From NCBI RefSeq assembly GCF_006345805.1, contig NC_043004.1, forward strand, positions 7,812,001 through 7,876,000: DNA of 64,000 bases, read 5' to 3'. The notes beneath the pieces are model-generated. The model ran no database searches. It was not told where the DNA came from and saw nothing but the letters and a program-made list of their open reading frames with translations. This stretch comes from Octopus sinensis (Eukaryota). Positions 4,040 to 62,362 of the stretch are shown here, one piece after another; positions within the stretch are counted from its first letter, which is position 1; each line of letters opens with the position of its first letter. The position numbers and the translations under genes were made by a program.

Positions 4040-4765
4040 GAATGTGGTCAATGCCAGTGGCACCTGATGGGACCCCATGCCAGTGGAGCATAAAAAACAT
4101 CATTCGAGTGTGGTCGATGCCAGTGCCTCCTGACTGACCCCCGTGCCAGTAGCATGATACCAGTTCCACCTGACTGGCTTCCATGCTGATGACACGTAAA
4201 AAGCAGCATTTCAGTGTGGTTGATGCCAGTGCCCCCTATGCTGGTGGCACATAAAAAGCATGATGCTAGTGCCTCCTGACTGGCATGTAAGAAGCACCAT
4301 TCAAGTGTGGTCAATGCCAGTGACCCCTGACTGGATCCCGTGCTGGTGGCACATAAAAAGCACCATTCGAGTATGGTCATTGCCAGTGCCCCCTGTACTG
4401 ATAGCACATAAAAGGCACCATTCAAGTGTGGCCATTGCCAGTGCTCCATGACTGGTTCCTGTTCCGGGGGCACATAAAAGGCACCATTCGAGTGTGGTCA
4501 GTGCCAGTGCCTCCTGATTCACCCGTGCTGGTGGCACATAAAAAGCACCATTCGAGCATGGTCAATGCCAGTGCCCTCAGATTGGCTCCCATGCTCGTGG
4601 CATGTAAAAAGCACCCACTACACTCTCGGGGTGGTTGGCATTAGGAACGGCATCCAGTTGTAGAAACATTGCCAGATCAGACTGAAGTGTGGTGCAGCCT
4701 CCTGGCATGTCAAACTGTCCAACCCATGCCAGCATGGAAAGCAGATGTTAAACGATGATGATGAT
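4040..4765 (+). mobile_element. RTE LINE 3' end with ~8-10-unit minisatellite and (GAT)n tail
   Basis: 55-66-nt units GGCACATAAAAAGCACCATTCGAGTGTGGTCAATGCCAGTGCC, then the conserved tail GCATGGAAAGC...TTAAACGATGATGAT. More than 25 related tails occur across the window, e.g. 1372-1650, 6645-7195, 23966-24310, 25465-25740, 29939-30188, 30906-31365, 32070-32348, 44082-44880, 45686-46230, 49600-50282, 52075-52395, 53574-53850, 54425-54980, 61480-61975. Confidence 0.85.
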
Positions 4766-9940: not shown

Positions 9941-9946
9941 TTTATT
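9941..9946 (-). terminator. Polyadenylation signal of RPS20
   Basis: AATAAA on the minus strand 16 nt after the stop codon, followed by a GU/U-rich tract. Confidence 0.75.
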
Positions 9947-9962
9947 GCAAAATGTCCATGAT

Positions 9963-10019
9963 TTATGCATCTGCAATTGTAACTTCAACTTCAACACCAG
10001 GTTCAATGCTGATAGATGT
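9963..10019 (-). CDS. RPS20: RPS20 coding exon 4 (TSISIEPGVEVEVTIADA*)
   Basis: ttcag acceptor, conserved RPS20 C-terminus, TAA stop; AATAAA follows on the minus strand (9941-9946). Confidence 0.98.
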   Translation of the reverse strand, partial: TSISIEPGVEVEVTIADA

Positions 10020-10873
10020 CTGAAAGATCTTGTTAAGGAAAACCATTATACACAGAAAAGAACAGCAAAAACTCTCTTGATGACAGTAAACCTAGGCTCA
10101 CTTTATCTAATATGTCCCTGAAAGGACACCAGGGTAGCTTGGAGGAAGATTTCACAACTAGTAAGCCAAGCGGGCACATAAAAGGCTCCTTTGCACCAGT
10201 AATTAGCCTAATGTAGCTGCCATCACAGCCAATTTTTGAAGTTGACATTAGAAATAAGATCAAAAAACACTCTTGCAAATTGCACAAACTATTCTAATGA
10301 AATAAATCAATATTAATTAACCGACCAAAACCTTTGTGAGTGGATTTGGTAGACCTGACAAAACAAGTACCTGCAATTAACAAAAAAATTAAGTGCAATG
10401 GTCAATCATTCAACTAAAAACTTCAAAGCAGCATCCCAGCCTAATGAGTGAAACAATGTCACAAAATGATTCTGAGAGATGTGAAAGCTAAAAGCAATTC
10501 TATCAAGCTTTTTCATGAGCAAAAGTGACAGGCAGACTGGGATTGAAGCATTCTCACATACAAGGAGAATTAAAATTGTCAGTAACTGAGAGACAGACGT
10601 GTATAGTATTGTACGAGAAAGGAATAGACACACCTAGAGATCACAATATATTACCAAAGCACAAAGATGGCCAGTGTGAAGCTTACCAAAACTGTCTAAT
10701 TTCACAACATGGCTCTATGCTTGGTAAAACATCACTACAAGGGATGGAGGGAGAGAGAAAGAAAAATTGATAACTTATTTACTATTTACATACATCAAGG
10801 CCAATACAATGTACTAAAATCAATGACTCAATATGTCAGAAACAATAAAATTGTGCTGCCATCAACTAAAGTA

Positions 10874-10976
10874 AGTTGTAAAAACAACCACTGTTTAGTG
10901 ATAGCAAGTTTATATTTGCACCGTATACCACTAAATACTAATTATTAGTACACAGCCGGCTTAGTTAGTGCAGTGA
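10874..10976 (-). ncRNA. Candidate box H/ACA snoRNA, copy A (RPS20 intron 3)
   Basis: 98/101 identity to 12610-12710; 5' hairpin TGCAC/GTGCA with internal pocket; H box ATATAA; ACA 3 nt from the predicted 3' end; sense to the host gene. Confidence 0.65.
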
Positions 10977-11105
10977 TGATTATTGAGTACTTTCTATTTA
11001 AACATTTGCTCCTCATCCCCTTTACCTTGTATGAATAGGAATTTGACGTTCACACCACAACCCAATGTAAATCACAGACACCCAACAATAACTGGCATTC
11101 TTTTG

Positions 11106-11457
11106 TTTTGAATCGAAAAATCATAACATAGAACTTGGTAATTTCCGTGAACACGTGTTATCTTGTTAACTGTTAGTTGACATATTGAAATGGAAAGAGA
11201 AAGCTAATGGGTGCCTGTTTCTGCGTGTGTGCATGCACGTCTATTTCTGTGTTTGAGCGCGCTCTTTTCTTCAAGTTTAAAACACAACATTATCAGTGTA
11301 ATTTCGTTATATCTACACTTCACAACACAGAGGGACAAACACGCATGCACAACCCATTAGCTTTCGCTTTCCATTTCGATACATCAACTGACACATAACA
11401 AGGCAACATGTGCTCATGGAAATTACTGAGTTTTGTTATGATTTTTCAAGTCAAAAC
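11106..11457. mobile_element. Foldback MITE with ~105-bp imperfect terminal inverted repeats (RPS20 intron 3)
   Basis: 11106-11212 pairs with 11352-11457; interior related to the foldback at 16302-16580. Confidence 0.75.
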
Positions 11458-11532
11458 GGAAGAATTCCCAATAATTTAAACCCTTTCACTCCACCAAACA
11501 CTGTTTATAAAACAAAAATACAAAAAGGATAC

Positions 11533-11732
11533 AATCTGTTTTACTATCTCTGATGGACTGTGTAGATCAATAATTCTTTTGTGAATTCTCATCTGGTACC
11601 TGTCCCATGTTTTGGATCCTTCTCCACAAGGGGTCTTTCTTGTAGTGATACGGAGAATCTTAGTAGGCATACGAACAGGACCCTTAACTTTTAGTTGTTT
11701 CTCTTTGGCTCCTCTGATCAGATCAGCACACA
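11533..11732 (-). CDS. RPS20: RPS20 coding exon 3 ([25 protein letters not shown]...[10 protein letters not shown])
   Basis: cttag acceptor, 200 nt, phase consistent with exon 2; near-identical to known RPS20; ends at a GTATCCTTT donor. Confidence 0.98.
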
Positions 11733-11979
11733 CTAAGTTGAAAGAAAAGGTATTTAAAAACATTAACCACCAGGCAACATATTTGATCCAGCAAATCAGA
11801 ATTATGCATATACATCCTCTTTACAGATGACAAAATGTCAATAAACAATTAAACACAAATTCCATCAAAAAACAGAAATCACCTTCAGGCCGTGCTCACT
11901 TTGCATTGTCGTACAATATATTTCTGCTAATATATTCCAATAGGCACCCCCCCCAATCTTAATTTACAGAAATACTCAC

Positions 11980-12082
11980 CCTTTTCTAAGCTTTTTACAT
12001 TCCTACTCGTCAAGGTGATGCGGATTCTGTGAACTGGAACATCTTCAACTGGAGCCTTACCAGTGTCTTTAGCGCAATGAGC
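11980..12082 (-). CDS. RPS20: RPS20 coding exon 2 ([34 protein letters not shown]+G)
   Basis: ttcag acceptor, gtgagt donor, 103 nt; translation matches the uS10 N-terminus ([17 protein letters not shown]). Confidence 0.97.
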
Positions 12083-12607
12083 CTGAATTGAAAAATTTCA
12101 ATCAATTGAATAGAGTGAGAGAACAAAAGCACTAACAATTTGGATGGTGAATTAAAAGGGTTTCAATAAGTAACAGTTTTAGTTCAGCTCAAGTCCAGTG
12201 TTTATTGAACAAAGATACTCCACACACAAACTCCATTCAATCCAAAGTATCAAAGACGGCATGGTGTGTGGATGAAGATCGATTTGACAATTTATAAGCA
12301 AGGGGCTTCATTGTCTCATCGCTGTACTAATGTGAAATGTAAACTGCCCACAAGAGCCAAAGTATGTGGGCAAACATGTAAATACAGACACACATCACTA
12401 ATCCATGAAGGTGATCAGCAGAGCAGACAGAATATTCATTCAGTGCAACAACCATGCGTTTGATATTTTAAAACTCCAATCGTCTACCGTAATTTTATCA
12501 AAACAAAAAAAAATTTCTAAACTAAAACTGTTGTACTTCATTTGAAACAGGGTCAGAAAATAAAAAGGTTAGATCCGACATCAATGTAATGCTGACAGCT
12601 AATTGCA

Positions 12608-12710
12608 AATTGTGAAAACAACCACTGTTTAGTGCCAGCAAGTTTATATTTGCACCGTATACCACTAAATACTAATTATTAGTACACAGCCGGCTTAGTT
12701 AGTGCAGTGA
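12608..12710 (-). ncRNA. Candidate box H/ACA snoRNA, copy B (RPS20 intron 1)
   Basis: Duplicate of copy A with unrelated flanks; H and ACA boxes conserved. Confidence 0.65.
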
Positions 12711-13460
12711 AAACAACAGGTTATGTAGGCAGATATGTACAATATAAACAATGAGGAAACCAAGCACATCATTTCCATATTTTCAGAAAATACAATATCT
12801 ATGTAAATCATTCGTATACTCCTAAATAAAATAAACCAGGTTGATATCACAAAATTATCCTCCAGTTTCTTGACCTACATCAATAATTATGAACAGGCAA
12901 GCACTCTCCCAATAGTTATCAGTTACGGAAATTGGTAACAACAAAGTCGGAGAGAACTCGCGCCAATTATTCTTCGTAGAATTTATAAGCACAAATTGTA
13001 ATCTCGCCACAATTCTAGAAATAAATCCTTGGATAAATCTGTAGGAAACATCAACCTAATCATGTCCTATGATGCCGGGAAATCTTTTAAAGAGTGACAT
13101 ATATATATATATATACTATTTAAGGGATACTGGAGCAGCTGTGAATCATAAAAAGCGATTGACCCTAATTAAATCAGAACCTATATAGACAAAATGCACC
13201 AAAGCTTCCCATAATACATAGCACATAATTAACCACATGTTGACAGAGCAAGCCAGATTGATTTGGCGATCTGGATCTCATCGATCTCGTGACCTAGATC
13301 CGATCAGGATTTACCAGAGTTACACAACAAACAAGAATAACTTCTAATATGGGCAATTATTGAAAAATTAGTAGATTATAATGAAGAGATAAATAATTAT
13401 ATTTCGACAATCGTAATGTTTAACGAATTGGTGGTAAGTGGTAAAATGTGACTGAGATGG

Positions 13461-13653
13461 GTACTACTTGAGAAGTGGTCCCGGTGCGCGCACTCGCTAG
13501 TCATGACTAGTCGATCCTTATTTACTTTGTGTAAAAAAATTATTTATTTTGTGTTTTATTTACTTTGTTAGGTAGTCGTAGGATCGACTAGTCATGACTA
13601 GCTAGCGCGGATGCGCGACTACGCGCACCGGGACCACTGAACTAAAGTAGTAC
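13461..13653. repeat. GC-rich inverted-repeat element (MITE-like) in RPS20 intron 1
   Basis: AGTGGTCCCGGTGCGCG...CTAGTCATGACTAGTCGATCCT pairs with AGGATCGACTAGTCATGACTAG...CGCGCACCGGGACCACT. Confidence 0.7.
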
Positions 13654-14064
13654 TCTGGGATGTTTCCTGTGTAACTCTTCTCCAACGGTATGACCCTTAA
13701 AGGTCCGAGAAACTAATTTCTCGGACCGAATGAAACGTGTACAAATAGTAACTCCCACCCCGACCACAACGAAATAAGTGATTGCTGTGGAGTCAACGTT
13801 GGGACATTTGCTAAAACAGATCATAAAGGTTAAGACGAGAATATGAAGAATGCGGAAAGCGATGAATTGAATCCATTTCAAAAGAGCCAACATCATAAAA
13901 ACCGATGAATTTAATAATAATTTCCTTTAAAGACCGCATGGAGATGAAACATGGCGCCCACATGCTGGAATTTAATTGAGGACTTTTCAAACAGAAATTA
14001 CTCATTAAATATAACAATTGTAAACAAAATGGAAAATATCAACATAAATTTAATTTCTACATAC

Positions 14065-14067
14065 CAT
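14065..14067 (-). CDS. RPS20: 40S ribosomal protein S20 (uS10), coding exon 1 (ATG only)
   Basis: Minus strand reads AAAATG|gtatgt; an ATG-only first coding exon is typical of this gene; joins exon 2 in phase 0; a pyrimidine-tract start lies ~100 nt upstream. Confidence 0.85.
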
Positions 14068-14157
14068 TTTTAAGAATATTCTATGCCGGCCGACTTAATC
14101 AAAGACTTTCTAAGATCAGCGGTGAGCCAGGAAACGTCTTTTACGAGCGAAGCTCAC

Positions 14158-14174
14158 TTGGGAAAGAAAGAATA
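14158..14174 (-). promoter_or_regulatory. TCT/5'TOP transcription start motif of RPS20
   Basis: Minus strand ATTCTTTCTTTCCC about 100 nt upstream of the ATG; typical of ribosomal protein genes. Confidence 0.7.
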
Positions 14175-14590
14175 GTAGCTGCGCAGTTACTAAACTCGGT
14201 ACCAAAAATGGGGGTGAAAGGACGTCAGATTTATTTCTTAGCTTTCAAATATTATAAAATGCATAGATATCACTTATAACATGACAATTAAAACATTTTA
14301 AAAGAAATTTAAATTTCATTCGCTCTTTTTGTATCAAATTTGAAGTATTTATAATATATTTTATTTAACTCTGCACCCTCATGGACGAGTCCATTATGTA
14401 TCCCTTTTGACGTTATATTAAAAAATATTAAATACCCTCAAAAGGATCTAAACTCGAAGGTTTAAACACAGAATTAAAAAAATACACGACGATGATAAAA
14501 TTAAATAAATTTTAACGAACAAAGTGAATAATTTTCTTCCCAAATACCGGTTGTGACGTCATATGTACCACGTTATAGTCAAGATGGCAA
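14175..14590. promoter_or_regulatory. Head-to-head promoter region RPS20/TM9SF4 with CRE (TGACGTCA 14554-14561) and YY1-like motif (CAAGATGGC 14580-14588)
   Basis: Divergent first exons about 400 bp apart; motifs read directly from the sequence. Confidence 0.65.
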
Positions 14591-16301: not shown

Positions 16302-16580
16302 TTCGGCATTCTTTCGATATAACTCGACAAAATCAAAACATTTCACTTCGCGTATTTCCGTGGGAGCAAATGACAGTTCGATTCTGTTTTCTGCTTGGAA
16401 ATTTGCGGATTTTACATACACACATGAAACAGGTAACAAATATGCAAGGCTTTTTTTTCTTCAAGTTTAAAATGAGACATTGCTGGCATAATCTCGTTAT
16501 ATCTATACTCCACAACCCACGGAAATACCGAAAGTGAAATGTTTTGATTTTGTCGAGTTCTATCGAAAGAATGCCCAAGT
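16302..16580. mobile_element. Foldback MITE
   Basis: AACTCGACAAAATCAAAACATTTCACTT pairs with AAGTGAAATGTTTTGATTTTGTCGAGTT; arms extend both ways. Confidence 0.75.
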
Positions 16581-21830: not shown

Positions 21831-23214
21831 ACTATAATGGCGTTAGGAAGGGCATCCAGCCGTAGAAACACTGCCAGATCTGACTGGGCCTGACGAAGCC
21901 TTCCAGTTTCACAGACCCCAGTTGACCCGTCCAACCCATGCTAGCATGGAAAGCGGACGCTAAACGATGATGATGATGATGATGATATATATATATATAT
22001 AGATTTGACTTAGACATTAGGTTTCATCTGTTGAAGGTTTGTTGACATAGTTGAATGAATTGCCTTATGAAATCAATATTATCAATAAATTTCAGAGTAG
22101 ATAATACAAAAAGTACCAAAACCAATAGATATTTTTAACAGTCTCTGTATTGATTAACACTGTCAATCACTGCTGTTCTCAATGACCTCCCGTGTCTTTC
22201 ATCATTATCCATTTATTTTAGTCTCTTATGTACCCCTATATCTCCTTCTTCGTGGATTCTACACTTTGCACGTCATTCTATGGCTTTCTCTTTTATTTTC
22301 CTTTCCGATCCACTCCTATATCTCCCCCACCTGACCCTTCTGGTATATCCCGTCATCTGCACGCCCACCCTTGTTCATTACTCACTACATTAACCTCTAA
22401 CTCCCCCTGTTTACTCCTCCCCATTCTTGTGAAAACATTCCCTCCTTCCCTCCCTCCCATGATCCACCATGATCACCTTCTTGTTCCTTGAGACTTTGCT
22501 ACCTTCCTCTTATCTCCTTCAGCCATATATCTCTATTGCAAGACGTATGCACTTGTCTTTCTCTCTCATACTTTTGCCCTTCAACACCTGGCCTACAGCC
22601 ACCACCCTCCAGCTTCTCCCAAATACTTCCTCTTAGTATTTCGGAGCTTTCCCCCCTTTTCCTCCGTTCTGTTCTGTGTTGCAAGTTACCTGGCAACCTC
22701 ATCAGTGCTGGTGACACACTTTGTACAGTGGTTGGTATTAAGAAGGGCAACATCCAGTCATAGAAAGAAACCATGCCAAAGAAGACATTGAAGCTTGGCA
22801 CAGCTTTGCAGCTCCCTGCCAAGTCATCCTACCCCTGTACCAGCAATCTAGAACCTTGAGAAAACAAGATACAGAATGTTTACAGTCAACAAACACATCA
22901 AAAGTGTCCACCATCAGCAAAAATGCTGCTGAGGATTCAACGGAGGCGGGAGTGAAACATTAGCACAATGTGTCCAATATAGGCAGAACCATTAGCACAC
23001 TGGGCGAAATGCTTAGCAGTATTTCGTCTGCCGCTACATTCTGAGTTCAAATTCCGCCGAGGTCGACTTTGCCTTTCATCCTTTCGGGGTCAATAAATTA
23101 AGTACCAGTTATGCACTGGGGTCGATATAATCAACTTAATCCCTTTGTCTGTCTTTGTTTATCCTCTCTGTGTTTAGCCGCTTGTGGGCAATAAAGAAAT
23201 AACAATATGTCCAA

Positions 23215-23830: not shown

Positions 23831-26812
23831 TTGAACATCCAGTGAATTCATACATGATATTGAACATCATGCCCTACAATCTCGATGACAACGACCCGTA
23901 GACTGTGCTCAAAGTGCATCCAAGAAATTGACTTCATCAGACTTATCAAAATTTATCTCTGACATAATCATCATCGTCATTTAATGTCCACTTTCCATGC
24001 TAGCATGGGTTGGATGATTTGACTGAGGTCTGGCAAACCAGACTCCAATCTGATCTGACAGAGTTTCTACAGCTGGATGCCCTTCCTAACGCCAGCCACT
24101 CCGAGAGTGTGGTGGGTGCTTTTACGTGCCACCGACACAAGGGCCAGTTTGGTGGTACTGGCAATGGCCATGCCCAAATGGTGCTTTTTACGTGCCACCT
24201 GCACAGGAGCCAGTCCAGTGGTACTGGCAACGACCTCGGTCGAATGTTTCACGTGCCACCAGCAGAAGTGCTAGTAAGGCGACGCGGTAACGATCACGCT
24301 CGAATGGTGTGCTTAACATGCCATAATGAAATTAAAATGTATTTCACAGTCACACACGTCTCGCATTTCTTTTGCAGTTCAGTGTACAAATGAATAAAAC
24401 CTGATGAGTTCTTTAATACTGCAGATCCACACAGGAAACAGGCAACAGTTGCTTGCAACTTAGCAACAGTTTGCCAGTTAGGCTTTTAAAGATGTGCAAG
24501 AATCTTTCCCCAAATTTCCTTGTATCTGGAAAACTTACAGAACTGTTAAAAGAATACCTATTTCTTTACTACCCACAAGGGGCTAAACACAGAGGGGACA
24601 GACAAGGACAGACAGATGGATTAAGTCGATTATATCGACCCCAGTGCGTAACTGGTACTTATTTAATCGACCCTGAAAGGATGAAAGGCAAAGTCGACCT
24701 CAGCAGAATTTGAGCTTAGAACGTAATGGCAGACGAAATACGGCTACGCATTTCGCCCAGCGTGCTAATGGTTCTGCCAGCTTGCCGCATTACTCAAGGT
24801 GCTGCATAATGAAACTGGACTTGAAACCATGTGGCCAAGAAGCAAGCTTCTTCTCAGCCATTGTCATGTCTGAGAAAGAAATACCTGAAGAGTAATCACC
24901 ATTTATATAGCACAACTTGCTTTGACAATGATTCCAACCCTCTTGATTCTGTCTTCTGGTCTTATTGCATCAATGAGAGAAAAATGCTGTTTAGTTTGTT
25001 TATGGTTTGTCAGCTTGCAGTTTCTATTCTTGGTCTGGGCTTTTTACTTCATCTTAGAACAAGATATGTTTGTCTCTCTCTGTGTCATCTGAAAGCAATT
25101 CTCAAAAGAAATTGCCTATGCTGTCTTGTAAGCAACATTGGTGAATTGATTTGTTATAAGAACTATTTTACAAGGAAAATGTTGTATTTTGCGAGACAGC
25201 TTGCTGTTTGTGGTGGTAACAGTGGTAAGTCTAGCACTTGATCCAGTACATGCCTTGGTATTTAGGATATGTTCTTTTATGTGTTGTTTATTACTGTAGT
25301 ATATCAGCTCATATGGGGGGGTTAATGTCATCTGCATTTTCTTTGTTGCCATGATTTAGACAGATTCTGACAGCAGCAGATGGTTGTCCCGATGCAGGTC
25401 TTGTCATTATTTTTCTATGTATCATTACATCTTTGTTTTGACTGCAATTGAAAGCTGCTAAGTCATCATCATCATCATCATCGTTTAACGTCTGCTTTCC
25501 ATGCTGGCATGGGCTAGATGATTTGACTGAGAACTGGTGAACCAGATGACTGCACCAGGTTCCAGTCTGATCTGGCAGAGTTTCTACAGCTGGATGCCCT
25601 TCCTAACGCCAACCACTCCGAGAGTGTAGTGGGTGCTTTTACGTGCCACCGGTATGAGGGCCAGTCAGGTGGTACTGGCAACGACCTTGCTCAAATGTTT
25701 TTTTTCATGTACCACCAGCACAAGTGTTTGTAAGGCAATGTAAGCTGACTTGCAGGCCCCTGCTACATAGTTTCGCACTTGTCATGTGTGGATTATTTTA
25801 AAGAATACAAGAGTCTGGAATATCACTGACATTATAATTCAATGAGTTGGTAGTTCAGTTGATTGAGCAACTGGATTCCCTTCACCAAATCTATCATGGG
25901 ATTCATTTACTTTTATTATTCTGTGTGTGTGTAGCACGTATATCAGTGAAGTATACTTAAGGTGTACTTGGTGTATTCCTTTAAAAATAAAAATCATGAA
26001 ATAAATCATTTACGGAATTTTTATAAATCTTCTGTTTGCAACTTGTTACTGTATCATTTTACGTTCACTTTTTATGATGTTTTGGGGGTAGGCCATCATG
26101 GTTCAAGGCAGTTCTTAACTGCTCTCTCTGAGAGACATTGAAAATAACTACCCTCCTAGAGGATCAGGGGGCCACATCTTGCTTGTGTATTCTATTTTGG
26201 TATAGTTTCTATAGCTGGATACTCTTCCTAACACTAACTGTATCAAATTGGGTTCTGGGTGTGTTTTACTGCAATACCAGGGTCATTCCCGTGGTAAGAT
26301 CAAGTTCTTTTCTATCCTGTATTATCTCTGATTGTCAATCTCTACATTTCAATTGCCCTAGTATTATCCGAGTTAAGCTGTAATCACCAGATAATCTGCA
26401 CAACTTTTACTTAAAATAGAAGTGTGTGACATTGCATATAGTGAGGAGGGAAGCATGAAATTAGAAGTGGCAACTTATAACCGATAACTGCGCTTGCTGG
26501 GTCTTGAATTCATTTATAATACTTGACAAGTCACAACCAGCTAATTAATAGAGATCGTTAAGATGGTTAGTAGCTTGGCATCATAAAGACAATATTTGTG
26601 GTTGATTGTTAAAGAAGAAATGAGGAAGATTAATCTTAAACTGTTTTTGAGTTTTTGTCTGACTATTCATAATCTGCAGCATTCATCAATGAGTGATTAA
26701 AGCTTGAGTGATTAAAGCTTGTTGAGTTTTGAAGACAGACGTAAAAGTGTATCATGGTATTTGTTTTTCCTCAAGTGTAATAATGCTATATTTGAAGTTA
26801 ACCAAAGTAATA

Positions 26813-30452: not shown

Positions 30453-32751
30453 CTGTCCTAAAAATAAATCCCCAAAAAACGGTGGAGTCAGTGTCCTAGA
30501 TATTGTGCATGAACAAACAAAATAAATGGATTATCACTGGTGAAATGTGTTCGGTAAGTCTGCTTTATCAAGCATGACAGGAGACTCAACAACAAGTTTT
30601 AAAAGCTCAAACTCCTTCCCATTCTCCTCCCCCTTATCATCATCATCGTTCAATGTCCGTTTTCCATGCTGGCATGGGTTGGATCGTTGGACTCCAGAGC
30701 TGGCAAGATGGAGGGCTGCACTAAGCTCCAGTTTGTCTGTTTTGGCTTGGTTTCTACTGATGGATGCCCTTCCTAATGCCAGGGTGGCACTGGGTGCTTT
30801 TAATATGGCACCCCTGCCTCCTTTGCTTGCTATGTGGCTCCTTTCTTATTCATTATTATCTTTTTAAGTTCATAGGAATGGTTAAGGCAGGATGACTTTG
30901 TGGTATTCATCATCATCATCATCATCATCATTGTTTAGCGTCCGTTTTCCATGCTAGCATGGGTTGGACGGGTCAACTGGGGTCTGTGAAGCTGGAAGGC
31001 TTCGTCAGGCCCAGTCAGATCTGGCAGTGTTTCTACGGCTGGATGCCCTTCCTAACGCCAACCACTCCGCGAGTGTAGTGGGTGTTTTTTACGTGCCACC
31101 TGCACAGGTGCCAGACAGAGCTGGTGAACGGCCACGAACGGATGGTGCTTTTATGTGTCACCGGCTCGGGGCCAGGCGATGCTGGCAACGGACACGAACG
31201 GATGGTGCTTTTACGTGCCACCGACACGGGGCCAGACAGAGCTGGCAACCGGCCACAAACGGACGGTGCTTTTACGTGTCACCGGCACGGGGGCCAGCCG
31301 AGGCTGGCAACGGATGCGAACGGATGGTGCTTTTACGTGCCACCGACACGGTTGCCAGACATGGCCTATTGAATTCTTTGTTTGATTTGAGCATGAGAAC
31401 TAGGTTGTTTGACCATCAGACTTCTAGCAGACAGCTAGTTTTGAACTTCTGGTTTGACCCAGAGAACTATAAAATCAGAACACAGTTGGGGGTTGAACCT
31501 TGGTGGACACTTACCTGCATACTGAGAAAATTGCAAATTTCAGAAGGAAATGAAGTGAAATGTCTTAACCAGGAATTGAACTTGCATCATATACTTTTAC
31601 CTGTCGTGGCATTTATACTGAGTGACATGGTGTAACAGTAAATTATCGACATTTTGTTCATGCGTAATATTGGGGACATTATCTAACCCTATTTCAAGAC
31701 ATAAAGGTATGATTGGAAAGAGATTTGACTGTTAATTCTAGCAGGTCAAGCTAGACTAAATTTAAACATAGAAAACTGCTGCTGTGGGGGAAAGCAATTG
31801 ATATTTCAAACAAGCATTTCATTTATAGTTCACATCAAATTTTCCCATTTCAGAATGGTTGACAGGGATAATTTCTTGTTGTAAATTTAGACATGTTGTA
31901 GTAGTTGTTTTATGTAGACAGGTGCCCCTCTAATAACTGCTAATTATTTGGGTATATAAAGTAGGAATGAATGATGCGAAAACGGTTATATACATTCCTG
32001 CCAGTACCATATTAGTGACTGTTGTAAAGATCAAACTCATGTCTATAGATTAAATTTGTTCCACACCTTAATATCGAGCGTGGTCGTCGCCAGTGCCGCT
32101 GGACTGGCTCATGTGCAGGTGGCACATAAAAAGCATCATTTGGGCGTGGCCATTGCCAGTACCACCAAGCTGGCCCTCGTACCGGTGGCACGTAAAAGCA
32201 CCCACTACACTCTTGGAGTGGTTGGCATTAGGAAGGGCATCCAGCTGTAGAAACTCTGCCTGATCAGATTGGAGTCTGGTTCGCCAGACCTCAGTCAAAT
32301 CGTCCAACCCATGCTAGCATGGAAAGTGGATGTTAAATGATGATGATGGTTGCATTTAAGGTCTAGATTATCACTGAGTACCTGTTACGATTTTAAAAAT
32401 GTGTTGGAAAATTATCGAAGTTTAATACTTTAAAAGTTTTTTTTTTTTATAAATAATTAACTGTTATTAAATCTTTATGAATGACTCTTGAAAATTGATG
32501 CTTTTTTGTGCATTGGGAGGGATAAAGTGAATTGAATTGACTCAGATACACATGTTTGCTGCTTATTTTATTGAGTCTAGAACAAATAAATGAAAGTTTA
32601 ACCGAATCTCCATGGAATTTGAACTCAGGACAGCTGAAAGTTAACCGTGCCAAGTGCTGGAGTCTGATAATCCACTTGTCCTATCATTTTATTGATATTA
32701 ATGAATATTAAGTTTTACTCAGCATTTTTTTTTCTTTCTTTTTAATTATAG

Positions 32752-34751: not shown

Positions 34752-36000
34752 AATATATATACTGGGTGCAGTGGGTAAATTGTTGTCATATTTTTAATTT
34801 TGTGCATGTGCATCTTTTGTTTTTGATTTTGTTGACTACACAGTATAGTCGAATCAGTTGGACACCGTCTGTGAGAAAAACAGCACCATGATGCAATTCA
34901 CTCTGCCAGAAATTTGGTAACAACATGCTGTACTGCTTGGCATTTGCACTGGAAGCTCCAATATGAACATTCTAGTGCTTGGGTGTCAGCCTGAAGTCAG
35001 TGCTGAGGATTCAGAAAGAGTCGGATGAGTCTAATGTTGATTATGAAGGTACAGCAGCTTTGAAACTCACTCTAATTGTTCTGATAAGAAAAGAACTCTT
35101 GAATTTGTTGGTGAGATCCAGGCCATGATTGACTACAATCCCTCCAAGTCAATCAGGTCCATTGCCAGGGACATAGGAGTGTCTGAGTTTCTTATCAGGC
35201 AGGTAATGCATGAAGACATTTGATGGTCTTCATACAAGATGAAAAAGGGTCAATTTTTATCCCAAGCCATCAAAGACAAGAGGAAAGACTGCGGTATGAA
35301 GCTTTTGAACAAACTCAAGCATCCTCTCCAACCAAACATGCTTTGGTTTTTCTCAGATGAGAAAAATTTTTGCCAGGATCAGATGGCGAACGCACAGAAC
35401 AACCTTTGGTTTGCCGTGTCCCCAAAACATGTACCAAGTGTGATAAAAATCAAACATCCAGTCAACATCATGGTGTTTAGAGTGATCACTAGTGATGGCA
35501 ACATTAAGATTCCATTCATTTTCCCACATGGCTACAGACTCAACTCAGAGGCCTACATCAAGTGCCTAGAGGAGGTAGTGCTGTCCTGGGTGAAGAGGGT
35601 GGCTGCTGAAAGACCCTATGTCTGGCAACAGGACTCTGCACCAATGCCATACAAGCAGGAGAACCCAGTCATGGCTGTCAGACAATTTTTGCAATCACAT
35701 CACCCTAACGTCTGGCCACGTAACTCCCTTGATTATTATGTGTGGGGCACAGTTGAGAAAGAGACCAACAAAACTCTTTGTAACACCAAAGATGAACTGA
35801 AGGTAAGGATTATAACAGCATTCACCAACTTAATCAAGGAGATCGTCCAGAAGAGTTGCAGGAGATTCTGAAGTCGTCTGAAGGCTGTGGTTGAAGCCAA
35901 TGGTGATTTTATTGAATAAATTTAAACATTAGTTTTTCAAATTATTTCTACGTAAGTTTGGTAAATATATCTGTTAAAATGAGATGTCATTGTTATTTCC
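34752..36000 (+). mobile_element. IS630/Tc1/mariner element, probably maT (DD37D) family, degenerate
   Basis: 210-aa ORF 35239-35871 with WFFSDEKNF, VWQQDSAP and WP..LDYYVWG motifs; upstream stops; TA-CTGGGTG start. Confidence 0.85.
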
Positions 36001-39879: not shown

Positions 39880-41427
39880 GGCTATTAGAAAAAAGAGACA
39901 GGCTTGGAAGGACTGGAAGAATGGTGGTAGCAGGGAATCGTATCAGACTGCCAAAAGAGAAGCTAGGAGACAGGTTTGTTTAGCCAGAGCGGAAGCAGAT
40001 AAGAAAAAAAATTGCCAATGTTCTGCGCCGTGAGGACCAAAGACTTGAGGTATTTCATGTTGCAAGACAGTGTATGAGAGAGAATCGTGATGTGGTAGGA
40101 GAGAAATGTGTCCACATGGATGATGGTTCACTTGCACTAAATGAGGCTGCAAGGAGAGAGGTTTGGAGATGCCACTATGAAAGGCTGCTGAACAAAGAAA
40201 ATGAATGGGAGAAAGAGAGTCTGACGATTGTCGTCCCAACAGAGGGACCAGCTATCCGAGTTGACTGTACCTTGGTAGTTAAAGCAATTAAGAGTATGAA
40301 GACAGGGAAAGCCCCCGACCCATCAGAAATTACTTCAGAGATGCTCAAAATATCTGGCAGTGTCGGCATTAGCCTGTATAGTTAACCAGGTGATACACGA
40401 AGGAGTCATACCCAATGATTGGTATAGCAGCACTATAGTCAACTGCTACAAAGGTAAAGGTGACACTTTAAATACAAATAATTACAGAGGTATCAAGCTC
40501 TTGGATCAGGTAATGAAGGTCACGGAGAGGGTCATAGCCCAACTAATTAGGGAAAGAGTCAGTTTGGATGAGATGCAGTTTGGTTTCGTGCCAGGGAAAA
40601 GCATCACTGATGCTATATTTCTGGTTAGACAGCTGCAGGAGAAATACCTAGCCAAAGTTAAGCCCCTGTACCTAGCTTTGGTTGACATGGAGAAAGCCTT
40701 TGGCAGGGTCCCCCGATCTCTTATCTGGTGGTCAATGAGGAAACTAGGGATAGATGAATGGTTAGTGAGAGCCGTGCAAGCCATGTACAGGGACACTGTC
40801 AGTAAGGTGAGGGTTGGCAACGAGTACAGTGAAGAATTCCGGGTAGAGGTAGGAGTCCACCAAGGTTCAGTCCTCAGCCCCCTCCTATTTATCATAGTCC
40901 TCCAGGCAATAATGGAGGAATTCAAGACAGGATGTCCCTGGGAGCTCCTCTATGCTGATGACCTTGCTCTAATTGCTGAGTCACTAACAGAACTAGAGGA
41001 GACGTTTCAAGTGTGGAAACAAGGATTAGAATCGAAGGGCCTTAAAGTCAACCTAGCTAAAACCAAAGTCCTAATAAGTAGGAAGGCATGCAAACCACAA
41101 ATCCCTTCAGGTAGATGGCCTTGTTCGATCTGTAGAAAAGGTGTAGGTAGAAACTATATAAGATGTACCCAGTGTAAGCTATGGACACATAAGAGGTGCA
41201 ACAATATCAAAGGAAGGCTAACTGGGAGGATAGTTTTTGTATGTGGCAGAAGCTCGGGCACTCTAAATAACACTGAAAATATCCAGAGAACAACTTCCAC
41301 CACATTCCAGGGAGAAAAACTTGAAGTAGTTAATAGCTTCCGTTACCTAGGTGACCAAGTCAGTAGTGGGGGAGGGTTCACTGAAAGTGTAGCTACTAGA
41401 ATAAGAATAGCCTGGGCTAAGTTTTAA
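39880..41427 (+). mobile_element. RTE LINE ORF fragment with an open 355-codon RT region
   Basis: ORFs 40074-40385 and 40360-41427: QFGF, GVHQGSVLSP, YADD, Cys/His-rich WPCSICRKG...CTQCKLWTHKRC, F.YLG; truncated at both ends. Confidence 0.95.
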
Positions 41428-48765: not shown

Positions 48766-51700
48766 GTAAGTAGAAAGTACACCTATTAAAAAGTCTTTTT
48801 TTTTACATTTTATGAACCAGTGTCTGAAATTTAAATATATTTTCAATACATTTATTTTGAAACAGTATCTGATATATTAATGCTTTTGTGTCTTGTTTAA
48901 TTTTATGATAAAAGTCCTCAAATTTTCTTATTTGCTACCCCTCCCCCATCAGATTTACTCTTGGGATGTTTTATGCCACCTTTTGTCTTCTTAGTCATGA
49001 TTGATCATTTGTTTTTTTATTCCATTACTGGTTTCAGTCATTGGACTATGGTCCTACTGATGCCCTCAATTCCTATATAGAGATGGTGACTAGAATGTCG
49101 AAGGGCATCCCCAAATAATATAAGGGGCTTTTGTTAAATGCCATGCTGATTCTACCACCCTTCACCTATATCCATCATCATCATCATATCATCCACTTCT
49201 TCATGCTTGCATGGGTCAGACAAAATTTGTTGAGACAGATTTTCTACTACTGGATGTGCTTCCTGTCACCAACCTTCATCTCTTTCCAATCAAGATAATA
49301 TTTCCCTGTGGCTGGGCATGTTTTTCATGAAACACTGGAAACGAACAACATCAAACATATGACAGTGATGCTTATTTACAACACCATCATGTGATGCCAA
49401 GACAGTTGTAAATATAAACACATACGTTTACAACAGGCTTCTTATAGTTTCCATCTGCCAAATCCACTTACATTTTGGTTGGCCTGGAGCTATAGTAAAA
49501 GACACTTGCCCAAGTTGCCACACACTGAGATGGAACCCAAGACCACATAGTTGGGAAGCAAGCTTCTTAACTACACAGCCATTGCCTCACTGGTCATGTG
49601 ATGTGTATGGATGAAAATAGCTGTGTAAAGAAGTGCTGATCTCTAACTGTGGCAGGAACCAGTGGAAGATGTAGACCCAGGAAGACATGGAACAAGGTGG
49701 TGAAGCATGATCTTTGAATGTTAGGCCTCACGGAAGCGATGACTAGTGACTGAGACCTTTGGCAATATGCTGTTCTTGAGAAGACATGCCAAGCCAAATG
49801 GAATCATAGTCGTAGCCAATGCTGGTATCCTGTCTCTGGCACTTGTGTCTGTGCCACATAAAAGCACCTTTGAGCGTTGGGCCTCATGAAGGCAATGTGG
49901 CTGATGCTGGTGTTGTATAAATAGCACCTGTGCTGGTGGCATGTAAAAAGCACTTTTCGAGTGTTGGGCCTCACGAAAGCAATGACAAATGACGGAGACC
50001 TTTGGCAATATACCATCTTTGAGAAGAAGACCCATCAAACCCAGTAAAATTGTAGTTGTGGAAGATACTGGCGCCATGCAACTGGTACCCATGCTGGTGG
50101 CACATAAAAGCACCCGCTACACTCTTGGAGTAGTTGGCATTAAGAAGGGCATCCAGCTGTAGAAACTCTGCCAGATCAAGATTGGAGCCTGGTGCAGCCC
50201 TTCAACTTACCAGCCCTGGTCAAGCTATCCAACCCATGCCAGCATGGACAACTGTCATTAGATGATGATGATGATGATGATATATATAGAGATTTATTTA
50301 TATCTCCAGCTTTTCAACAGATTTTGTCTTGCAAATTTCAGTTACAAAGGTTTCATCAAGACCTGTCCCTAAATCTTTTTCATTCTGTGATTTGCTTTTA
50401 GTCCCTTCTACTGATATTCTTAACAGATTCCATTAGTCTTGGAAGACTTTGTTCACAGACTAATTGAGATTCATTCCATCTGAGATAATCTTGTAGTTAT
50501 TTCGTTTTTATTATATCTTCTGGACCCTCATCATCATTTAATGTCCATTGTCCATGCTGGCACGGATTGGCCAGTTTGACCAGGCTGGCAAGCTGGAAGG
50601 CTGCACCAAACTCGTCTGATTTGGCATGGTTTTCTACAGCTGGATGCCCTTCCTAACACCAACCATTGTGAGTGTAATGAGTGCTTTTACATGCCACCGG
50701 CACAGGTGCCAAATATATTTGCTTATAATGTCTTGCCAAAGAATTGCACAGAGGCTACTAAATGATGTAAAATAAAACTCCTTGCCTGTTTTCATTTTCC
50801 TTACCCCATTATCATCATCATCATCATTTTCACGTTGACATAAGAAGGAGGGATCTACAGTCTGGCATCTCAGTGCTGTGTCTTCTCATCTGTCGTTAAT
50901 TCCAATTCTTCATTGATTAAAACCAATCACGTTATCGATGCATTCTTAGGATTATCTCAGCCTCACCTTATAAATATCATCTCATGCCATTTTTGCCTCC
51001 CAGTGTGTATTGTCTGTCTGTGTTATGCCTCATATACATAATATAGCTTAAGCTACATCTCAGAGATTAGCTTTTAAGACTGGATAGCAGAAATTATTCC
51101 CGTTCTGGTCAGCTCTGACAAAGCTCAAGTGAAACCCACTATAGAGTACTGCTTCCACATCTGGGATTAGTAGTACTCTATTTTGGTGCTACTATGACCA
51201 TAATTGTTGTTCACCTTTTTCAAAAATTAGGTATTCAACTGTTGTTACAGACATGTCACCTCCTCACATTGTCTTTAACTATTACAACTTCAGCTTGTCA
51301 AGGCTACCTTGTTTCATAGCATCTCCATTGAAGTGCTCTCAACATCTCTCTTTCATCAGCTACACTGTGGTGTCTCATCCCCCATGACCTCTCCACAAAC
51401 TCTCTACAGTTCCATTGTGAGCCAAGTTCTTCACAAATGACAGCTTACAAATATTAAAATTGAACATTGATTGTATCAATCTCACCAGTCTTTTAATGTC
51501 CGTTGTCCATATTGGCATGGGTTGGACGATTCGACCAGGGCTGATAAGCTGGGAGGCTGCACCAGACTCCATTTGATTTGGCATGGTTTTCTATGGCTGG
51601 ATGCCCTTCCTAACACCAACCACTCTGAGAGTGTAATGGGTGTTTTTATGTGCCGCTGGCATGGGTGCCATGCGAATGGCACCAGTATCTGCCACGACTA

Positions 51701-53126
51701 ATTTCGCTTGGCTTGATGGGTCTTCTTCTCAAGCATGACATGATGCCAAAGGTCTCAGTCATTGCCTCTGTGGGGCCCAACACTCGAAAGGTGCTTCAAA
51801 GATTTTAGTCATTGCCTCCGTGAGGCCCAACGCTTGAAAGGTGCTTCAAAGGTCTTAGTCATTGCCTCTGTGAAGCCCAACACTCGAAACAAGCTACTTC
51901 TTGTATATGCGTCTACTCAATCCATTTTACTAAGAAAAGCTGATATTTCTCAAATATTAGTAATGGAGCTTGTTTAGGTTTTAGGACTTTTAAGAGATTT
52001 AGTGATAATATCAGAATGCGAAGCAAGTGTTTAAAAAAATCAAAACTGAATGCAGTATTGTTTGAGTTATGGCATTATCATCATCATCATCATCGTTTAA
52101 CGTCAGCTTTCCATGTTAGCATGGGTTGGATGATTTTGACTGAGGGCTGGCGAACCAGACGGCTGCACCAGACTCCAATCTTGATCTGGCAGAGTTTCTA
52201 CAGCTGGATGCCTTTCCTAACGCCAACCACTCCGTTTTGTAGTGGGTGCTTTTTATGTGCCACCGGCACGGGGGCCAGTCAGGTGGTACTGGCAATGATC
52301 TTGCTCGAATCTTTTACACATGCCACCAGTACAGGTGCCAGTAAAGCGATGCTGGTAACGATCACGCTCGAATGGTGCCGTTTTATGTGCCACTGAAAGT
52401 AACTATTCAATTGGTGCAGATATAAAGCTGCTTAAGTTTGTAAAGGAATTGGAAGAAGTATTTCCAATGTCTTGAACAGAGTTTTTCTATGGAGAGAAGA
52501 ATAAGGATGGATTTGTCTTTGTTCCATGGGAATTATAGTCAAGGAAATGGCAGGAACTTAGTTATTGGGCGTGGATGGGAGGGAAGTAACTAGGGAGAGA
52601 AAAGTGGTGCGAGATAGAGATGGGGAGAGGTGGGAGGAGAAGATAAGGTGGGAGGTGGAGGATGAAAAAAAGTGAGCAAAATGAGGAAGAGAGCTGAAGA
52701 GGATTGGTAATTTTAAGGCAAGGAAGATATTAAAAAAAAATTTTGTTGGTTATCTCTGCAACAGAGGCAAGAAGTTTGTCAATATCATTCTTCACATGGA
52801 ATCAGGATGCTGGCAAATTGTTCACACATAAATTACTCTTAAGAGTTTGTTTCTTCTTTATTGTGTTGTATCAAGGTATAGGGTTTGTCAATGAGTTCAA
52901 AGTCGTTTGCTTTCCTTTCATCTTTTCTTTCAGAGAAAAAGAAGAAAAAAACCCATATTAGGCTTACCAGACTTGTTTTACAAAATATTCATAATACAGA
53001 CTGCTTGTGTACCTCTTCTAAATATTTTGCATGGTGTTTAGATATAATGCTTTGATTGGGCTTTCTGCACCATACAAGGAAGGAATTTTTACCTACTATT
53101 TATACGATGTTTTTCTTTTTCTACAG

Positions 53127-61240: not shown

Positions 61241-62362
61241 TCATAGTGTTATATAGTTATGTTTCATATTTAATGTATATACACCATTGTTAGGCTTGTT
61301 ACTGCTGTATTTGTCCTGAGATAACATCACTTATGGGATGTGCTGCATTAAAAATACAATAGTGTTATATATAATTTTGACTGCAGATGTTGGTATTATG
61401 CTGTCATAAGCAAATATTATATAAAGATTTTGCTTTTCCTAGTTTATATCCATTTTCCATAACTTAGCATATAAGTGAAATCAAAATGGCTGACGTGGTC
61501 GATGACAGTACCACCTGATTGGCACTCATGCCAGTGGAATGTTAAAAGCAACATCTGAGTGTGATCGTTGCCAGGGCCACTGACTGGCTCCCATGCTGGT
61601 GGGACGTAAAAGACACCATTCGAGTGTGATCATTGCCAGCATTGCCTGACTGGCACACGTGCTGGTAGCTTGTGAAAAACAACATTTGAGCGTGGTCATT
61701 GCCAATGCTGCTGGACTGGCTCCCGTGCAAGTGGCACGTAAAAAACACCTTTTGAGCATGGTCATGCCAGTGCCGCCTGACTGGCCCACGTGCTGTTGGC
61801 ATGTAAAAGCATCCTCTACACTCTCGGAGTGGTTGGCATTAGGAAAGGCATCCAGCTGTAGAAACTTTACCGGATCAGATTGGAGCCTGGTGCAGCCTTC
61901 TGGCTTCCCAGACCCCAGTTGAACTGTCCAACCCATGCCAGCATGGAAAGCAGACATTAAACGATGATGATGTTGATATATAATTAGGATAATTTTCTGT
62001 ATTGGAACAGTTGTTTTTCAACTGAACTCTAATCCCACCATTAACAACTCCTCTGATCAGGACCTCCTTTATTTTGCTTGTCATGGGAAATGGTCCAAGC
62101 AGTTAAGTGCCTTGCTCAAGGGTGCAAAATACAATGGTTCTACTAAGATTTGAACCTGTCATCATATGGTCAGAACTTCTTGCTATTGTTCTATTTTTTC
62201 ATATTAAAAGAAAAAAAATTCTTTGTTTATTTTTAGAAGTATTTAATTTCTTTTCTGAGCATTGAAGTAACTTCTTCATAAAATATGCCAAGTTCCTGCC
62301 AGGAACCCTTTTTAAAATTTTTTTTTGCATTTTTACGTCTTTTTTTTTTTTTTTTGCAATAG

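Follow-up and report, generated by a model that had tools for sequence, protein, structure and literature searches.

The RPS20 locus and its surroundings

The window analysed here, meaning the whole stretch of 64,000 nucleotides given above, lies within Octopus sinensis chromosome CM016866.1 (assembly GCA_006345805.1) and carries on its minus strand the ribosomal protein gene RPS20 (uS10), whose parts are collected in Table 1. The O. sinensis locus fetched with the protein XP_029639898.1 is an exact substring of this minus strand. Conceptual splicing yields a product of 120 aa that ends in VTIADA and is identical at 120/120 positions both to XP_029639898.1 and to CAI9726992.1, the RS20 protein of O. 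vulgaris. We place the 5' end of exon 1 provisionally, by the pyrimidine run CTATTCTTTCTTTCC. The match to the annotated protein, together with the conservation of the C-terminus, whose 18 residues show 94-100% identity across phyla, indirectly indicates that the junction formed by removal of intron 3 is used in the mRNA. Among the RPS20 protein matches, the JGI protein P0001 (199 aa) scored 292 bits, far above the others though just 76% identical; duplication or fusion of the model may be the cause.

Table 1. Features of the RPS20 locus, in positions of the window
Feature	Position	Strand	Remarks
RPS20/uS10 exon 1	14065..14175	-	5' UTR and ATG at 14067..14065; annotated gene range begins 14067
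RPS20 intron 1	12083..14064	-	U2-type, ordinary, 1982 nt, GTATGTAG...TTCAATTCAG
H/ACA-like RNA candidate, copy B	12582..12710	-	in intron 1; H box AUAUAA 12649..12644; ACA 12587..12585
RPS20 exon 2	11980..12082	-	AHCAKDTGK...SLEK
RPS20 intron 2	11733..11979	-	U2-type, ordinary, phase 1, 247 nt, GTGAGTAT...CAACTTAG
RPS20 exon 3	11533..11732	-	VCADLIRG...EIVKQI
RPS20 intron 3	10020..11532	-	predicted U12-type, GT-AG, phase 0, 1513 nt, between Ile102 and Thr103
Predicted U12 5' splice site GTATCCTTT	11524..11532	-	directly 3' of the Ile102 codon; fits /RTATCCTT
Long imperfect inverted repeat	11094..11468	.	in intron 3; arms of 81 and 35 nt, 83-86% complementary
H/ACA-like RNA candidate, copy A	10849..10976	-	in intron 3 (predicted U12-type); about 128 nt
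Copy A, lower stem	10972..10968 with 10921..10917	-
Copy A, guide strands	10967..10957 and 10929..10922	-
Copy A, H box	10915..10910	-
Copy A, ACA	10854..10852	-
Predicted U12 branch-point motif TTCCTTAAC	10032..10040	-	followed by aagatctttcag; ends 12 nt upstream of exon 4
RPS20 exon 4, coding part	9963..10019	-	TSISIEPGVEVEVTIADA, then stop codon
AATAAA 3' of the coding part	9946..9941	-

RPS20 stands head-to-head with a TM9SF/EMP70 gene that extends from 14563 onward on the plus strand, and the same arrangement recurs in Branchiostoma, Ixodes, Lingula and Owenia (seven loci, Octopus included). This microsynteny is conserved across bilaterian phyla, and the two genes probably share a promoter region. 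In the two cnidarians the upstream neighbour of RPS20 is an ankyrin/FAM220 gene. TM9SF motifs, compared with the translated plus strand, gave no match. Between the EMP70 gene and RPS20 of Owenia (locus L012, positions 1493-1734), strong though sub-threshold matches to several models of plant microRNA precursors were obtained on both strands, reaching 101 bits and an E value of 8e-21; the stretch is most likely a long hairpin repeat and not a microRNA.

Repeats of several kinds are found in the window. The long inverted repeat of intron 3 has a partial copy at 16455..16519 and looks like an inserted hairpin-forming repeat that accounts for part of the intron length. In intron 1, nested inverted repeats at 13474-13638, with 30-nt arms that are 93% and 24-nt arms that are 92% complementary, make up a compact palindromic element. 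The open reading frame at 40360-41427 on the plus strand encodes 355 aa with a reverse transcriptase domain (RVT_1, E value 1e-30) and a weak PHD-like zinc finger, and is probably a retrotransposon fragment. Six further frames on both strands (4048-4473, 24010-24393, 30964-31635, 49721-50113, 52016-52396 and 61526-61957) have peptide strings such as LDALPNANHSESV and FTCHRH in common and form one dispersed repeat family; two of the six were compared with Pfam and had no match. The 210-aa frame at 35239-35871 on the plus strand, which looked like a mariner-type transposase remnant, had no Pfam match at E values up to 0.01.

Splice signals and ancestry of the third intron

Exon 3 ends with AAACAGATT at 11533, exon 4 starts with ACATCTATC after the last intron base at 10020, and the termini of the intron between them are GT...AG. 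The original prediction had singled out the donor and the branch sequence of this intron as matching the U12 consensus, and both are present and fit it. The distance of 12 nt which it had given from the branch motif to the 'cag' applies to exon 4, whereas the first base of the 'cag' itself is 9 nt away. It had also described the other introns of the gene as ordinary; introns 1 and 2 indeed have the donors GTATGTAG and GTGAGTAT, and their 3' ends are pyrimidine-rich tracts. U12 introns constitute well under 1% of introns, and phase 0 is the less common phase among them.

Neither of the two motifs is enriched in the window, where 4 sites of RTATCCTT compare with 4.6 expected and 2 sites of TCCTTAAC with 2.0 expected, and therefore their mere presence carries no weight. 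The frames ahead of the remaining three RTATCCTT sites are closed by stops, and neither these sites nor the weaker RTATCCY sites coincide with exon edges. No RTATCCTT was found from the CDS start of TM9SF4, at 14563 on the plus strand, to about 34 kb, the range scanned; the single weaker match in this range, ATATCCCGT at 22345, lies away from any exon edge. In RPS20, the donor and the branch motif both stand exactly at the edges of an intron whose position is set by protein homology, a coincidence which, judged from the sequence, cannot be chance.

The behaviour of these signals over evolutionary time was followed in 17 genomic loci of RPS20, in which exons were mapped with tblastn, with proteins taken from a homology search and a cluster listing. 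In 11 loci, spread over seven phyla, an intron interrupts the gene at the same phase-0 boundary (KQI|TSIS); among them are Branchiostoma floridae and another Branchiostoma assembly, the crinoid Antedon mediterranea, a tick of the genus Ixodes, the snail Physella acuta, the octopuses O. vulgaris and O. sinensis, the brachiopod Lingula anatina, the annelid Owenia fusiformis and the coral Acropora digitifera. The donor GTATCCTT is invariant in all 11, and each of them also has a U12-like branch motif (CCTTAAC, CCTTGAC, TCCGTGAC, TCCTTAAT or TCCATAAC) that ends 9-14 nt from the exon. The length of the intron, from 116 nt in Physella to 2541 nt in Ixodes, varies more than 20-fold. An internal control is provided by the neighbouring phase-1 intron between Lys35 and Val36 (EK/V), which occurs in 17/17 loci with 13 different GT-hexamer donors, none of them with ATCC (GTGGGG, GTAAGA, GTATTG, GTATGT, GTACGT, GTGTGT, GTAGTG, GTGAGT, GTGAAT, GTAAAT, GTAATT, GTATAC and GTAAGT). 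Eight intronic bases that remain invariant in seven phyla, beside a neighbouring intron whose donor varies freely, reveal U12-type constraint.

The position is without an intron in Nematostella, in the clam Mya arenaria, and in the carp Labeo rohita together with four other vertebrate assemblies, where residues 62-120 are encoded uninterrupted by the last exon. This result, obtained with Labeo and the four other assemblies, is consistent with the statement of the original prediction that the main human RPS20 isoform is without an intron here. The intron-losing lineages carry other introns in RPS20, at about codon 61/62 in vertebrates and at about codon 80/81 in Mya arenaria (six loci in all). 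Was the intron, then, inherited or gained, a choice which the original prediction had posed as a comparison across phyla? Its presence in a coral and in bilaterian phyla up to amphioxus, and its disappearance from Nematostella, Mya and vertebrates, argue for an origin before cnidarians and bilaterians diverged and for several later losses. As far as these loci indicate, intron 3 is ancestral to both groups, repeatedly lost and not gained, and is a peculiarity neither of octopuses nor of molluscs. Taking signals and distribution together, we regard it as almost certainly U12-type and ancient in origin.

A duplicated H/ACA-like element

The same intron harbours an element resembling an H/ACA snoRNA, which has a second copy in intron 1. 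A repeat finder reports two 104-nt copies, 96% identical, at 10873..10976 and 12607..12710. These are the only two copies in 64 kb, and both lie in sense orientation within RPS20 introns. When the copies are compared along with their flanks, similarity starts 3-4 nt ahead of the first stem and fades right past the ACA triplet. The hairpin-hinge-hairpin-tail fold is obtained for both copies, the z-scores being -4.3 and -2.6, and 0/200 shuffles fold as well; the hinge AUAUAA fits the H box ANANNA, and the ACA lies 1-2 nt past the second hairpin. The basal stem of this second hairpin is formed by UUGCUAUCA with UGAUGGCAG in copy A and by UGCUGGCA with UGUCAGCA in copy B, so both arms differ between the copies and the pairing is kept.

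When the pocket of the first hairpin is modelled open, it has the lower stem UGCAC/GUGCA, the 5' guide strand UAACUAAGCCG and the 3' guide strand GGUAUACG, and its upper stem is 14 nt from the H box, the canonical spacing. This pocket pairs with the 18S sequence ...GGAGCC-U-G-CGGCUUAAUU..., assumed in octopus from the general eukaryotic conservation of the site; one side forms 7 contiguous pairs plus 2 more, the opposite side 3. The U left unpaired is the equivalent of human 18S U1232, a site that is 98% pseudouridylated in human and conserved in nine vertebrates. In shuffles of the guide strands with fixed geometry, only 2/200000 match the 1232 site equally well. Jorjani et al. (2016) name the 5' stem of SNORA70 as its guide and rate this family as conserved only in vertebrates.

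The snoRNA candidate announced by the original prediction proves a credible one of the H/ACA type. On the sense strand, Rfam searches with the elements alone gave at E values under 1 matches to H/ACA families only: ceN45 (26 bits, E value 0.002), SNORA70, SNORA43, SNORA75 and snoR137. At E values up to 10, weaker matches outside H/ACA, namely to miRNA precursors, appeared on this strand as well. None of the matches of the candidate reached its Rfam gathering score (20-26 bits against 40-60), and a search of the whole 64-kb window at gathering thresholds had no match. The duplicated element of 104-128 nt may alternatively be a repeat fragment or a local duplication that folds by chance and produces no snoRNA. 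Such an origin would agree with the missed gathering scores, with guide pockets that are mostly self-paired in the minimum-energy fold, with a second hairpin for which no target was found, and with a BLASTN comparison against the RPS20 loci of other phyla, which gave only chance-level matches and no homologue. It fits poorly with the restriction of the copies to RPS20 introns in one orientation, with similarity that stops at the predicted boundaries of the RNA, with H and ACA boxes that appear correctly placed, with a basal stem altered on both arms and still paired, and with a guide that suits a known, conserved pseudouridine site at the right spacing.

We lean towards the element being a genuine H/ACA snoRNA. 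On the modelled pocket it is a good candidate, like the 5' domain of SNORA70 in its predicted action, but not a demonstrated member of the SNORA70 family. The distance from the second hairpin to the ACA in copy B is about 20 nt and not 14-16. The second pocket of copy B could pair with 18S close to the position that corresponds to human U1725, but this was rejected: no pseudouridine is known there, the pairing is missing in copy A and the ACA spacing is wrong. A comparison of O. sinensis with O. vulgaris is uninformative about constraint on the snoRNA, as all introns are nearly identical between the two. No box C/D candidate turned up in the three RPS20 introns in a crude scan that looked for a C box, a D box and a terminal stem.

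Splicing, regulation and comparison with known systems

How would this intron be removed, and does its type matter to the gene? By knowledge of the class, the U11/U12 di-snRNP would recognise donor and branch site jointly and U4atac/U6atac.U5 would complete the reaction, joining Ile102 to Thr103; we infer that intron 3 depends on the minor spliceosome in this way. The octopus intron has grown to 1.5 kb, apparently in part via the hairpin-forming repeat. After excision it would be debranched and trimmed to the snoRNP-protected H/ACA RNA, the usual route for intronic snoRNAs, and the first hairpin appears built to guide pseudouridylation at the 18S site equivalent to human U1232. Our overall explanation, to which we give a probability of about 0.9, is an ancient U12-type GT-AG intron that is removed by the minor spliceosome and carries an H/ACA candidate. 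The simplest reading is that its splicing is constitutive and has no special regulatory role.

The regulatory gate which the original prediction proposed appears unlikely to us; under such a gate slow or limited minor splicing would restrain both RPS20 mRNA and the intronic RNA, and retained transcripts would be detained in the nucleus or encode a uS10 with an altered tail. A precedent is the U12 intron of ribosomal protein L1 in Xenopus, which is poorly spliced and regarded as regulatory (Bartschat and Samuelsson 2010). Seven phyla have preserved the U12 type with no conversion to U2. Reading through the donor does remain in frame, as had been claimed, and meets a stop after 18 codons, but the read-through peptides of the different loci share only the residues VS, which are encoded by the splice-site consensus itself. 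The usual nonsense-mediated decay is triggered by a downstream exon junction; with no further intron after intron 3, transcripts that retain it would lack such a junction, and any effect of retention would more likely be exerted through nuclear detention. The outright loss of the intron in vertebrates, Mya and Nematostella speaks against a gate and argues that the intron is dispensable, and its wide range of lengths tells in the same direction. No second GTATCCTT that could act, as a tandem donor, as a U11-binding enhancer was found nearby. Nor can snoRNA hosting explain the retention of the U12 type, because the snoRNA-like element was found in the two octopuses only and the snail intron measures a mere 116 nt. 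Larue and Roy (2023) moreover argue that neutral processes explain much of the persistence of minor introns.

A stronger form of the regulatory idea would hold that the U12 type was kept for more than half a billion years because the production of 40S subunits is tied to minor-spliceosome activity, a link dropped by vertebrates, and that the octopus intron also times the release of a guide RNA directed at a conserved 18S pseudouridine. We find this quite doubtful; were it true, the SNORA70 lineage would predate vertebrates. The weakest alternative, an ordinary U2-type intron whose likeness to the U12 consensus is accidental, could appeal to the chance frequency of each motif taken singly, but is exceedingly improbable against the placement of both at the exact intron edges, a donor (ATT|GTATCC) that fits the U2 consensus poorly, and the invariance of GTATCCTT in 11 orthologous loci next to a freely varying neighbour.

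Under the explanation we prefer, that of an ancient, minor-spliceosome-removed intron, RPS20 intron 3 is a clear new example of a well-described class and offers no new mechanism; the result is solid and neat, but would not surprise a specialist. In full-text searches of the literature, no mention of a U12 intron in RPS20 by name was found. A pan-eukaryotic survey names O. sinensis in its comparison of minor-intron conservation, so the intron is probably present, unremarked, in a genome-wide catalogue already. Few U12 introns are known in ribosomal protein genes, and the RPS20 case is very clean, with a control intron and independent losses, which makes it a convenient marker for the retention and loss of minor introns. 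Since RPS20 needs very high expression, it also lends itself naturally to asking whether gene output is limited by a U12 intron. If the snoRNA is real, a guide thought to be vertebrate-specific (the SNORA70 5' domain, acting on 18S pseudouridine 1232) would extend to molluscs.

Against the U12-type GT-AG class as a whole there is structurally nothing different about this intron: it has the same donor /GTATCCTT, the branch TCCTTAAC near the acceptor, the same lack of a strong pyrimidine tract, and the same deep conservation of position and type. Its particulars are phase 0 and its residence in a ribosomal protein gene whose expression is very high. U12 introns have been reported in the ribosomal protein genes S13 of Rhizopus and Phycomyces, L4 of Physarum, and L31 of Phytophthora sojae, P. 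infestans as well as P. ramorum, for the second of which the summary sentence gives L13 (PMC2846911). They resemble the RPS20 intron in being rare and in ribosomal protein genes, and differ from it in gene, position and lineage, none having been reported in RPS20 or in animals.

The intron of Xenopus L1 hosts the U16 snoRNA, and its regulation and an alternative cleavage route have been shown by experiment, whereas the octopus case is known from sequence. The Xenopus laevis L1 (RPL4) regulatory intron has been described as U12-type (PMC2846911). In both cases a ribosomal protein gene has a U12-type intron that carries a snoRNA (a candidate one in octopus), but the genes are different and U16 belongs to the box C/D class.

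SNORA70 (RF00156) resembles the octopus element in its first hairpin, which is collinear, with AACUAAGCCG against AAUUAAGCCG agreeing at 9/10 positions and with 18S pseudouridine 1232 as the predicted target. The SNORA70 scores of the octopus copies are 20.3 and 20.4 bits against a gathering score of 40, with E values of 0.03 for the element alone and 0.8 over 3.8 kb. The second hairpin remains unaligned, and, with folds read against the 18S sequence, neither strand of its pocket is complementary to the other target of SNORA70, 18S-1692. The host gene is also different, human SNORA70 being carried by an intron of RPL10.

RPS20 itself is a snoRNA host in vertebrates as well, with SNORD54 (U54); this RNA differs from the octopus candidate in being box C/D and in lying in the vertebrate U2-type intron 2. 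In Labeo rohita it was recovered from RPS20 intron 2 (locus L006, 1961..2029) at 52.9 bits, where the gathering score is 35. This fish U54 was the sole Rfam find in nine other RPS20 loci; the octopus locus and eight others, seven from invertebrates and one from a fish, returned no U54. The snoRNA cargo of RPS20, as predicted from these loci, is thus different between lineages.
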